The position numbers were made by a program, and so were the translations under genes. The notes beneath the pieces were generated by a model that was not told the origin of the DNA, ran no database searches, and saw only the letters and a list, made by a program, of their open reading frames with translations. From the sequence record MW812342.1: a stretch of 64,000 nucleotides of DNA; one strand, 5' to 3'. Within the stretch, counting starts at the first letter, position 1; every line of letters begins with the position of its first letter. This document shows positions 39,074-42,207 of the stretch, one piece after another.

Positions 39074-39691
39074 ATGTCTCGTCGTAAAAAGCAGCCTGGT
39101 TTTAGCCCGCGTGAAGCAGCACGCGAACGTGTCCGTAGCGTCATGCGTGGCATGAACACGACCGAGAATGTTTTCCTCGGTCATTCGAAAACGCACGCCG
39201 AGAAAATCGACCGTGAGTTTGAACGTATCAACTCGCTGATGGGTGAAGACCTGAAAGCGTATTTGACCGAGTGGTTAAAGAACTCTCAGGCTGCCTTCTT
39301 GGGTGCCATGCAAGACTTCAAAACGCGCCTGTTTGCTGTGCGTACTGATGCCGACGCAAAGGCGACCAAACTGATGGAGGTCATCGACAACCACAAGTGG
39401 GACGAAATCAAAGACGTTGTTGTTGTGGCTGAGCTGGAACTGGCGGACTTTGACATTCAGGTGGATACCGTGGCGCAGGAAACCCTGCTGTCTATCGTTG
39501 AAGCCGGTGCCGCTTATGAGCAGCGCCGTGAATGTGTCCGCGTGGGCCTGCACAACAACTGGTCCCATGAAGCAATCCTGACCAAGCTGCGCGAGCTGGA
39601 TGCCCAAGCCGCGGCGGCCGCATTAGCGGCGGCAGAAGCAGCAGAAGCGTCAGAGCCTGTAGCAGAGCAAGAGGAAACTGCGAATGTCTAA
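39074..39691 (+). CDS. hypothetical coiled-coil protein
   Basis: Start MSRRKK with TAAGGA SD; 205 aa. Confidence 0.75.
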   Translation: MSRRKKQPGFSPREAARERVRSVMRGMNTTENVFLGHSKTHAEKIDREFERINSLMGEDLKAYLTEWLKNSQAAFLGAMQDFKTRLFAVRTDADAKATKLMEVIDNHKWDEIKDVVVVAELELADFDIQVDTVAQETLLSIVEAGAAYEQRRECVRVGLHNNWSHEAILTKLRELDAQAAAAALAAAEAAEASEPVAEQEETANV

Positions 39692-41741
39692 TGATCCGCG
39701 TCCGTCGTTCGGTGCTGCCGAACCGGAAACGGCTGAGGTGCAACTTCCCCCACGCGAAGCCCTAGTGGGTAAAGACGTGGCGGAGGTGGCCTTCGAGCTG
39801 GTAAAACTCAATCCCACTTTTTCTTTTGCCGAAGCAACTGAGCGCGCGAAAGGTCTGGTTATGCTAAACGCGCCGGTAGACGATACGCCGCCGCCGGTGG
39901 TAGACGCTGTGGCTGGCGTGCTCGATACGCCACTTGGTGGCGATCGCGAAGCGTCGCCGGAGGATCTGGCTGCACTCAATAGCACTGAGAACCAACTGGA
40001 GCAGCCGGTCAAACTTGACCTCTCTCCGGTACAACCTCAGCCGGAACCAGAAGCTGCGCAAGCGGTGCAGCCGCGTGTTGAGCACATCGCCGAAGCACCG
40101 CCGATTGTGCAGCCTTTAGGTGTACAAACTCCTAAACCGGAACGGGTTCCGGTTAAGGCAGAAGTGATTCCTGCTCCGGCACTCGATGCCGAAGATGCCC
40201 CGGCAGACCGTGATGAGCAGACGCCAAACCTCTCGAAAGAGAAACGCCGTCAGATTGATTTCGGGCCAGAACCACACCGTGCTGAAATTACCAGCATGGA
40301 CCCGGAAGATCCCCATCGCGTCCTGACGCAAAGTGATGAGCTGGTTGGCACCACACTGCCACTCGCCGGTGAGCAGGAAGTCATGCAGTTCTTTGCCAGC
40401 ATCCCGCGTAACCGTGAGGGGCGTCCGATGTTCCGCAATGCCGCCGAAGAGGAGCGTTATCAGAAGCTCTTTACGGCGCTGGAACTGACCCCGCCTATCA
40501 TGATTAACAACCGTGCTGCGTTTGACATGGCACTGGAACGCGAAGATACGGCGTGGCAACAAACCATCAAACTGCCGAACAACAAGTTTGTGTCTGCGGT
40601 AACCGACCGTGGTGCAAACGCGCAAGGTGCGATGGCTGCCCTGCGCCGCCGTCGTGGTTCCGGTTCACCGGTTTCCGTGTGGCTGCCTGCGACCGGCATC
40701 TTCGTTGGTTTCCGTGCCCCGCATGAAAACGACATGTGTGACTTCGATATTCGTATCACGTCAGAGCAGTCGAAAATCGGGATGTTCACCTACGGTCTGC
40801 TGTTGGCCTCGTCTTCGGGCGTGTATCTCCAGCACATGATCGAGCATTCGCTGAACTTTGCGGTAGACACCACTTACGACTGTCAGGGTCTGGACATTAA
40901 GACCGCCCTGATGGACATCGTGGATGTGGACGACTACTGGCTGCTGGTCATCGGGCCGTTGATGGCGAAGTTCCCGGCGGGGATTCCGTGGAAGCTGCTG
41001 TGTCCGAACCACGAATGTGGTCATGAGCGTGAAGTGCGTCTGAATCTGGCTCGCTGTATCCGTATGGCAGATGGCCTGTTCTCTGACCTGCACCGTTCGC
41101 TCTGGCTGCGCCAGCGTGGCAAAGGGCCGGATGCGATTATCGGTAACGCCGAGTATCTGGAATACCGCAAAGAGCTGCCGAAGTCCAAAGCCGCCCGTTT
41201 CCATTACGAGCAGCTGGGCATTACGGTAGAGTTCGGTCGGTCAACCATCGGTCAGTTCATCGATAACACCAATGCGTGGGTAGAGAAAATTAACACCTCT
41301 GCCACGAACGCACTGGCAAACCATGCCACTGAATCCGAGCGCTCGCAATACATTCGTCTGGCTGCGGAAAACCGCCGCTTGACGCGTTACGCGACACACG
41401 TTAAAGCCATCATCGTTGAAGAGACGGTGAAAGGCGAACCGGTTGAGACCCGCGAAGAAGATCCAGACCGTATCTTTGAGATGTTAGAGGAACTCTCTTC
41501 TGACCGCATGTACGTGCTGGCATTTGAAAACGCGCTGTCCACTTACAACGAAGAATCGCGCATGGCCGTGTTTGGTTACATGGGTCACGCGTGTCCGAGC
41601 TGTAAGACCGGTGAGGGTGAAGAAGACGGTCCGTTCCGTGGTATTGTTACCATTAGCCCGGACAAGGTTTTTTTCGCGCTATCTCGTGTGGTGTTCGAGA
41701 TACAGAGAGTCTACTTACAACAATTCGAAAATATTGGATAG
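39684..41741 (+). CDS. conserved protein (phiKZ gp77-like position), possible tail/baseplate assembly chaperone
   Basis: 685 aa, Pro/Ala/Glu-rich N-terminus, CPNHEC and CPSC Cys pairs reminiscent of T4 gp26-type hub chaperones; GAGGA SD. Confidence 0.65.
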   Translation: MSNDPRPSFGAAEPETAEVQLPPREALVGKDVAEVAFELVKLNPTFSFAEATERAKGLVMLNAPVDDTPPPVVDAVAGVLDTPLGGDREASPEDLAALNSTENQLEQPVKLDLSPVQPQPEPEAAQAVQPRVEHIAEAPPIVQPLGVQTPKPERVPVKAEVIPAPALDAEDAPADRDEQTPNLSKEKRRQIDFGPEPHRAEITSMDPEDPHRVLTQSDELVGTTLPLAGEQEVMQFFASIPRNREGRPMFRNAAEEERYQKLFTALELTPPIMINNRAAFDMALEREDTAWQQTIKLPNNKFVSAVTDRGANAQGAMAALRRRRGSGSPVSVWLPATGIFVGFRAPHENDMCDFDIRITSEQSKIGMFTYGLLLASSSGVYLQHMIEHSLNFAVDTTYDCQGLDIKTALMDIVDVDDYWLLVIGPLMAKFPAGIPWKLLCPNHECGHEREVRLNLARCIRMADGLFSDLHRSLWLRQRGKGPDAIIGNAEYLEYRKELPKSKAARFHYEQLGITVEFGRSTIGQFIDNTNAWVEKINTSATNALANHATESERSQYIRLAAENRRLTRYATHVKAIIVEETVKGEPVETREEDPDRIFEMLEELSSDRMYVLAFENALSTYNEESRMAVFGYMGHACPSCKTGEGEEDGPFRGIVTISPDKVFFALSRVVFEIQRVYLQQFENIG
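41669..41702 (+). other. putative programmed -1 ribosomal frameshift signal
   Basis: In-frame heptamer T TTT TTC (41669-75), 4-nt spacer, TATCTCG/CGAGATA hairpin (41680-41702); the -1 frame is open into ORF 41780-42148. Confidence 0.7.
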
Positions 41742-41779
41742 ACGCCGACGACGTTCCAGCCGAAGCCATCATCACTGCC

Positions 41780-42148
41780 ATGAAGCTGGACACCACCTCG
41801 CTGTTCAAACGGCGAGACAGTCGACCTATCACGTATCAAGAAGCGCATGACGAGCTACTCTCCACGTACGACGGGATACTCGGGTTAGAGACCGGTGAGA
41901 ACAACATCAGTGTCTCTGACTTTGAGAATCCCATCAACCAGAGCCTGTATGAAATCTGGGCGACCACGTACGTGCGTGAAGGTATCAAGGAACTGTTTGG
42001 ATACGACCTTGATACCTGGCTTGATAGGCCGCGTTGGAAGTTGATGAAGCATCTGGAAATCGCAAAACGTCGTCGTGCTGAGCTAGACAATGCTAAGAAA
42101 GGCGCAATCCCGCCAGAACTTGAGAAAGAACTGAAGGGACGCATCTAA
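41780..42148 (+). CDS. C-terminal module probably expressed as a frameshift fusion with the 39684 gene
   Basis: No SD before ATG 41780; frame open upstream to 41657. Confidence 0.65.
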   Translation: MKLDTTSLFKRRDSRPITYQEAHDELLSTYDGILGLETGENNISVSDFENPINQSLYEIWATTYVREGIKELFGYDLDTWLDRPRWKLMKHLEIAKRRRAELDNAKKGAIPPELEKELKGRI

Positions 42149-42175
42149 GGGAGCTTCGGCTCCCTTTTATTTTTT
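42149..42175 (+). terminator. intrinsic terminator
   Basis: GGGAGC-TTCG-GCTCCC followed by a T-tract; identical stem at 62321. Confidence 0.75.
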
Positions 42176-42207
42176 TGTTGTTATGAGACCCATTTTAGGA
42201 AACCGTC

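Follow-up and report, generated by a model that had tools for sequence, protein, structure and literature searches.

Comparative evidence for recoding of the core gene cg18 in nucleus-forming jumbo phages

We analyzed a window of 64,000 nucleotides from sequence record MW812342.1, which is 100% identical, with identical coordinates, to the genome of Erwinia phage pEa_SNUABM_10 (Machinavirus; 238.9 kb). The window contains an open reading frame (ORF) of 685 amino acids (aa; 39684..41741, plus strand, as are all features described here) that sequence homology, PHROG assignment and synteny identify as the homolog of phiKZ gp77, the core gene cg18 of Chimalliviridae. In the public record, this ORF (locus tag _00059) and the one that follows it (_00060) are annotated as two separate hypothetical proteins. 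On comparative grounds recoding at the cg18 locus is very likely, and we consider it probable that the two ORFs are one recoded gene that produces two proteins through ribosomal -1 frameshifting. A first-pass annotation of the window had proposed a fusion of about 821 aa made beside the 685-aa product. The recoding that it implies is strongly supported by the comparison of related sequences, and the arrangement is conserved across the nucleus-forming jumbo phages, which is broader than originally claimed.

The slip site and the open -1 frame

Frame 0 of the 685-aa ORF reads GTT TTT TTC at positions 41667-41675 and hence contains the slippery heptamer T TTT TTC (41669..41675) in the X XXY YYZ register. 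The 0-frame codons TTT TTC encode Phe663-Phe664 and are part of a run of seven Ts at 41668-41674. In the -1 frame, a TAG at 41654-41656 is followed by 163 sense codons and a stop (41657..42148), an open stretch that runs through the ATG at 41780 and ends with the TAA at 42146-42148. The 157 codons past the T-run would form the trans-frame extension. Both the in-register heptamer and the -1 frame that opens after the TAG and leads into the downstream ORF had been described by the first-pass annotation, and both were verified. The two frames share a dual-coding overlap (41676..41741), in which frame 0 has its last 21 sense codons and its stop and the -1 frame begins the extension. The overlap is conserved in both frames, and its frame-0 part corresponds to a predicted C-terminal helix. 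Out of the 41 ORFs of at least 200 aa in the window, 9 have a -1 frame that remains open for at least 100 codons beyond their stop, and only one, the ORF at 39684-41741, has an in-register heptamer inside the overlap. The window by itself is only suggestive of recoding; conservation in related sequences raises the finding far above chance.

We compared the locus in three sets of relatives. The close set comprised 12 relatives from five genera, namely Machinavirus, Seoulvirus (including SPN3US), Erskinevirus, Derbicusvirus and Wellingtonvirus. The distant set comprised phiKZ-type KTN4, PhiPA3, 201phi2-1, Goslar, RAY, PCH45, PhiEaH1, DT01, Xoo-sp14, SURPRISE13, FLC9, JM-2012, pEa_SNUABM_48 and BRkr. 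A further 38 loci, many of them metagenomic and with 25-30% protein identity, were retrieved from IMG/VR using two alignments as queries. Overall, the tally included 82 related loci in 68 distinct contexts, reached down to approximately 20-25% protein identity, and had one locus that ends at a contig edge.

All 12 close relatives have an invariant run of seven Ts followed by C, a 0-frame stop exactly 22 codons past the run, and a -1 frame that continues without a stop past the run and into the downstream ORF, with the -1 peptide conserved from the run onwards. Similarly, the distant named phages have Phe-Phe encoded on a T-run and a -1 frame open for around 150-176 codons, and the 38 IMG/VR loci are identical in behavior. 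When the entire tally is considered, the Phe-Phe pair is encoded by TTT TTY in 81 out of 82 loci (68 distinct contexts), where it precedes the 0-frame stop by 8 to 44 codons. The -1 frame runs on without a stop for 149 to 179 codons past the site in all 81 complete loci, the 82nd being cut by the end of its contig. Among these 81 loci we found no homolog that lacks the run or that has a stop before the downstream ORF, either of which the first-pass annotation had held would speak against a fusion.

The canonical heptamer T TTT TTY is present in 56 of the 68 contexts (T TTT TTC in 32 and T TTT TTT in 24), and the other 12 keep the U_UU.Y tetramer behind a G or an A (G TTT TTT in 8, G TTT TTC in 3 and A TTT TTC in 1). 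The length of the T-run also varies, with T5 in 4 contexts, T6 in 11, T7 in 38 and T8 in 15. In the close relatives, frame-0 synonymous variation ranges over 0.35-0.54 for most of the gene (mean 0.44). It decreases to 0.18-0.25 for the residues from ~659 onwards, which coincides with the point where dual coding would begin, and is zero at codons 662-665. Across all contexts, the first Phe codon is always TTT, never TTC. Caitlin-type loci (L005, L006, L021 and L034) have a second T5 run in the overlap, GTC TTT TTA, which lies 8 codons before the 0-frame stop; it is in a non-slippery register, is absent elsewhere and is probably incidental.

The similarity between -1 frames starts right at the T-run across phiKZ-type phages, and homology links the -1 domain found in the window clade with the phiKZ-type -1 stretch (hhalign probability 97.9%, E 5e-13). 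A search with the profile of the -1 domain among 1.84 billion representative proteins detected no genuine single-ORF fusion, the matches being small proteins only; other long matches to the profile were rejected as fusions, as they are repetitive proteins. A 312-aa metagenome protein (P0070) reads from the C-terminal region of the upstream gene through other frames into the downstream domain, and most likely derives from indel errors in a low-quality metagenome contig rather than from a natural fusion. Since the -1 domain is homologous across clades, no single-ORF fusion was found and the close homologs of the upstream protein are all 543-706 aa long, the split would appear to have been kept, and not just tolerated, since the origin of the family.

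Probable ribosomal frameshifting and its alternatives

According to the mechanism that we propose, most ribosomes would stay in frame 0 and stop at 41741, thus producing the 685-aa protein with the predicted helix as its last 22 residues. A minority of ribosomes would slip by -1 on U UUU UUC (41669-41675), with one tRNA-Phe on UUU in the P site and another on UUC in the A site, and would then read the -1 frame to 42148. In the resulting long isoform of approximately 821 aa, the helix would be swapped for a mainly helical domain of 157 residues. The arrangement would be ancestral to Chimalliviridae, and its purpose may be to fix the ratio between two isoforms that have a common body and different C-terminal interaction modules.

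We favor a shift made by the ribosome over one that arises during transcription. The invariant feature of the site is its register, with TTT TTY as 0-frame codons. Because this register is kept, the A-site tRNA-Phe could re-pair perfectly in the -1 frame, and the P-site tRNA-Phe could do so fully in 56 of the 68 contexts and at two out of three positions in the rest. In all 15 contexts with only T5 or T6, the U_UU.Y tetramer stays in register with the A site. In Escherichia coli, efficient -1 motifs include heptamers of the type H_HH.U_UU.Y, the tetramers U_UU.C and U_UU.U come directly after A_AA.G in their tendency to shift, and insertion sequence (IS) elements use U_UU.U_UU.C (PMC4066793).

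A 7-bp hairpin (TATCTCG, a 9-nt loop and CGAGATA; 41680..41702) starts 4 nt past the heptamer, as reported by the first-pass annotation. Its role as a stimulator is unsupported. The hairpin is the minimum-energy fold of region 41676-41710 (-7.1 kcal/mol), with a stability comparable to that of shuffled sequences (z = -0.07; 80 of 200 shuffles fold as well or better). Most close relatives keep a core of 5 bp, the hairpin is broken in Wellington-type sequences, and pair counting in the close relatives revealed 79.5% of cells paired and no compensatory changes. The hairpin has no common counterpart in distant relatives, and no RNA structure in the 50 nt after the run is shared across 19 lineages, for which z is mostly near 0.

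Several points weigh against ribosomal frameshifting. Neither a conserved downstream stimulator nor an upstream Shine-Dalgarno-like element was found at the site. As no conserved stimulator is visible, the efficiency of the shift is presumably low and may be very low. The Phe-Phe pair is conserved in the protein, and the 0-frame protein thus explains part of the conservation of the T-run, although it leaves unexplained why the first codon is invariably TTT rather than TTC. The run is a T7-T8 homopolymer in 53 of the 68 contexts, so that polymerase slippage is possible, and Chimalliviridae use their own atypical multisubunit polymerases, whose subunit genes flank the locus. An ATG is present at 41780 in the window and near that position also in SPN3US, so that some independent initiation is possible. 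Finally, the support for a trans-frame protein is comparative throughout.

Some of these points bear on transcriptional slippage, the main rival, which we hold to be unlikely, whether alone or as a contributor. In this case, the phage or the host RNA polymerase would stutter on the template A-run and add one U in some of the transcripts, with the same outcome at the protein level; the two kinds of slippage could also operate in combination. Known transcriptional slippage in bacteria occurs on homopolymers of about 7-9 nucleotides or more, and the run in the window is T7. Runs of T5-T6 are poor slippage templates in known systems, yet the -1 frame is open and conserved in the 15 contexts that have them, which include PhiPA3, FLC9, BRkr and several metagenomic lineages. 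Moreover, an invariant codon register is relevant to tRNA re-pairing but not to polymerase stuttering. The lack of a conserved RNA structure or Shine-Dalgarno-like stimulator does suit a mechanism that needs none, and UUUUUUU is depleted in every frame of E. coli genes, for which slippage may be responsible (PMC4066793).

It is considerably less probable that the locus hosts two ordinary genes, with a T-run that merely encodes Phe-Phe and a downstream gene that starts at its own ATG or at non-canonical starts, perhaps by reinitiation. Every GenBank record that we examined annotates the locus in this way. In the window, the downstream ORF is recorded as a separate protein of 122 aa (pEaSNUABM10_00060; 41780..42148) that belongs to PHROG 7580, a family that models a 119-aa protein from that start. 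This ATG is not conserved, so that its status as the genuine start of an independent 122-aa protein is unsupported, and we verified the first-pass observation that it lacks a Shine-Dalgarno sequence, since no GGAG-like motif occurs within the 18 nt upstream. No other start codon is conserved either: the first -1-frame ATG lies 33 to 138 codons past the site across relatives, mostly without a Shine-Dalgarno motif, and in several lineages it falls more than 110 codons into the ~160-codon domain. Annotators have chosen at least six different starts for the downstream ORF, some of which are deep inside the conserved domain. In three records, the downstream ORF is annotated into the overlap: RAY gp266 (L017 3559-4107, even beyond the T-run), Wellington gp52 (L010 3432-3875) and Asesino gp57 (L008 3474-3884). 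These upstream-extended annotations reflect a long open -1 frame without a proper start.

The stretch upstream of the ATG also argues against two ordinary genes. The apparent spacer of 38 nt (41742..41779) is coding by comparison with the relatives, because it evolves as -1-frame coding sequence. The 36 nt between the 0-frame stop and the ATG have no stop and no indel in 20 distinct sequences, and they vary with the periodicity of -1-frame codons (summed pairwise differences of 4.86 for codon position 1, 3.37 for position 2 and 7.67 for position 3). The start of the -1-frame similarity at the T-run in phiKZ-type phages, the suppression of frame-0 synonymous sites in the overlap and the constant TTT as first Phe codon all point in the same direction.

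The idea of an artifact or of decay, namely a single gene split by a homopolymer sequencing error or a pseudogene with a recent frameshift, is refuted for practical purposes: homopolymer runs are error-prone and the metagenome protein P0070 crosses frames near the run, but 68 independent sequences, which come from both isolates and metagenomes and were produced by different technologies, show the same frame relation, the 0-frame tail past the site is conserved and ends at a conserved stop, and no intact single-ORF version occurs among the 1.84 billion representative proteins. Even when taken together, independent genes and artifact remain improbable.

Genomic setting, protein family and function

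The ORF upstream of the 685-aa ORF encodes a protein of 205 aa (39074..39691) that is the homolog of phiKZ gp78, according to its annotation, its PHROG (8045) and its synteny with the gp78 homologs of PhiPA3, 201phi2-1 and KTN4. It shares 8 nt (39684-39691) with the start of the 685-aa ORF, and the two belong to one transcription unit; the overlap suggests translational coupling. Directly 3' of the stop of the -1 ORF, a terminator-like hairpin composed of 8 pairs with loop TTCG and followed by a T-rich tail (42147..42176) marks the end of the gp78-gp77 transcription unit. We found no terminator-like site between the 0-frame ORF and the downstream ORF, which is consistent with a single transcript.

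In the records of the relatives, the neighboring genes are named RNA polymerase beta subunit, ATP-dependent helicase, second RNA polymerase subunit and DNA polymerase. The phiKZ-type phages have a gene block composed of gp80-gp79-gp78-gp77 and a small ORF, with the helicase close by, and homologs of phiKZ gp78 and gp79 also adjoin the locus in the window clade. Given the flanking helicase, RNA polymerase subunits and DNA polymerase, the locus is a replication and transcription neighborhood rather than a tail module. The first-pass annotation was thus correct in remarking that no tape-measure gene is adjacent.

Homologs of the 685-aa protein include phiKZ gp77, PhiPA3 gp074, 201phi2-1 gp136, SPN3US gp39, Goslar gp081 and RAY gp267. 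In the published list of Chimalliviridae core genes, phiKZ gp77 is cg18 and is described as a 'hypothetical protein' (PMC10299810 supplement). The membership of the window protein in cg18 is supported by tblastn matches to phiKZ-type KTN4, PhiPA3 gp074, 201phi2-1 gp136, Goslar, RAY and PCH45, by PHROG 4585, which is common to the window protein and its distant homologs, and by the synteny kept with the homologs of gp78, gp79 and gp80. The similarity to the distant homologs stops near the slip site. In several records of the SPFM series of Salmonella phages (P0045-P0047, H137), the homolog matches just 5-10% of the query or the proteins are of odd length, which suggests that these records are permuted or broken inside the cg18 gene.

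For the 685-aa protein, AlphaFold gave a model with a mean pLDDT of 71, in which most of residues 200-685 score above 80. The model consists of an alpha/beta core (residues 200-685) and a final helix (659-682) that begins at the slip site. The N-terminal ~200 residues (39684-40280) are rich in Pro, Ala and Glu, variable in length and predicted to be disordered (pLDDT < 50 at residues 64-190); phiKZ-type homologs (507-604 aa) are without most of this region. Four cysteines (440, 445, 637 and 640; window 41001-41603) are near-invariant, phiKZ-type homologs included, and their CxxC motif is 22 residues upstream of the slip site. Judging from this conservation, they probably form a zinc-binding site just upstream of the shift. 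When the -1-frame piece was modeled alone, the mean pLDDT was 56, too poor for a fold search.

The first-pass annotation had interpreted the pair as the jumbo-phage equivalent of the tail assembly chaperones G and GT of phage lambda. The topology is indeed the same, with two overlapping ORFs that a -1 shift late in the first one would join. The interpretation itself failed on profile similarity, genomic position and size, and we therefore rejected membership in the G/GT family. We detected no Pfam or PHROG match to tail-assembly-chaperone families for the window proteins and nine distant homologs: Pfam returned only sub-threshold noise, and the PHROG matches (families 8054, 4585, 7580 and 12109) are all of unknown function. 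Neither in the window clade nor in the phiKZ-type phages does the locus lie between the tail tube and tape measure genes, and the short product is 685 aa long. A phiKZ gp077 homolog, Churi gp256, is among the proteins found in early-infection proteomics (PMC11849849). The 201phi2-1 homolog has no mass-spectrometry flag, while its neighbors gp138 and gp139 are flagged. The lack of profile similarity, the unfitting neighborhood, the unflagged 201phi2-1 homolog and the early Churi homolog all argue against a role in late morphogenesis.

A Foldseek search of the 685-aa model against BFVD returned family members and one entry labeled 'Baseplate hub assembly protein, bacteriophage T4-like'. This modest match (E 8.9e-5; TM 0.24 relative to the query and 0.50 relative to the target) is the sole lead towards morphogenesis. 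Two GenBank records of relatives have a 'T4 gp26 like' note, in agreement with the BFVD label, and PMC3004832 lists T4 gp26 as a chaperone of hub assembly. No meaningful match to PDB sequences emerged from phmmer and profile searches with both parts, and no PDB fold matched the 685-aa model in Foldseek better than E 0.6. We regard an assembly chaperone function as a lead that is more probably wrong than right.

Among known systems, the closest relatives in topology are lambda G/GT, P2 E/E+E' and the conserved tail-gene frameshift of long-tailed phages. In common with lambda G/GT, the cg18 locus would produce a minor isoform whose C-terminus is extended through a -1 slip late in the ORF, and the arrangement is conserved despite sequence divergence. 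The products of lambda G/GT are absent from virions and are made at a ratio of ~30:1 (PMC5009743). Differences from lambda include the heptamer, which here is U UUU UUC/U, and the short product, which here is 685 aa as compared to ~100-150 aa. In addition, the cg18 locus lies among replication and transcription genes instead of between tail tube and tape measure, has no chaperone profile match and has an early homolog.

With T7 10A/10B, cg18 would share a -1 shift shortly before the stop of a long ORF, a U-rich tRNA-Phe site, a C-terminal extension and no obvious need for a local hairpin. The slip site of T7 gene 10 is of the G GUU UUC type (PMC5009743). In T7, the extension is short, occurs on the major capsid protein and needs a distant 3' element, whereas in cg18 it would be a conserved domain of 157 aa on a non-virion core protein; no distant 3' element was found for cg18, although no search aimed at one was made. 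The dnaX gene of E. coli produces tau and gamma by -1 slippage on a homopolymeric heptamer, and that of Thermus does so by polymerase stuttering on a run (reviewed in PMC5009743). As proposed for cg18, there are two isoforms with a common N-terminal body, and dnaX indicates that the same outcome can be reached through a ribosomal or a transcriptional route. Unlike in cg18, where the shifted product would be the long one and no stimulator is evident, the shifted frame of dnaX terminates almost immediately, its product is shorter and the site is flanked by strong stimulators (a Shine-Dalgarno-like element and a hairpin). T4 gene 26 makes two products by internal initiation. Its protein shares with cg18 the BFVD fold label and the notes in the two records, but there is no Pfam or PHROG match, the sizes are very different, the T4 protein itself was not returned by the search, and the early expression of the Churi homolog does not fit a late role.

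A possible hidden domain in a core gene

None of the approximately 26 annotated genomes marks a joined coding sequence at the locus. A full-text literature search found no report of a trans-frame protein from cg18, and no link of phiKZ gp77, of SPN3US gp39/gp40 or of jumbo phages to frameshifting or transcriptional slippage; mentions of 'gp77' in other papers follow the numbering of other phages and were discarded as irrelevant. Programmed -1 frameshifting is well known, and what is new is this instance in a Chimalliviridae core gene. We put forward only tentatively that the long isoform is an unrecognized functional form of a core protein of the early, nucleus-based life cycle rather than of tail assembly, with a slip site inherited from the common ancestor.

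The gene is among the few dozen that are common to all chimallin-encoding jumbo phages, including the models phiKZ, PhiPA3, 201phi2-1, Goslar, RAY, PCH45 and SPN3US. On the tentative reading above, the small 'hypothetical' ORF of these phages (phiKZ gp76 region, SPN3US gp40, Goslar gp082 and RAY gp266) would be a hidden core domain that is expressed only through slippage, to which stuttering by the atypical RNA polymerases of the phages themselves may contribute. The locus would also offer a natural test case for slippage on U UUU UUY without an obvious stimulator. The corrected model of the core gene would explain both the inconsistent start of the small ORF and its absence from core lists, and would add a conserved domain of ~160 aa. 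It would also provide a handle on the core protein itself, with two isoforms, presumably at a fixed ratio, in which a C-terminal helix is swapped for an interaction domain.

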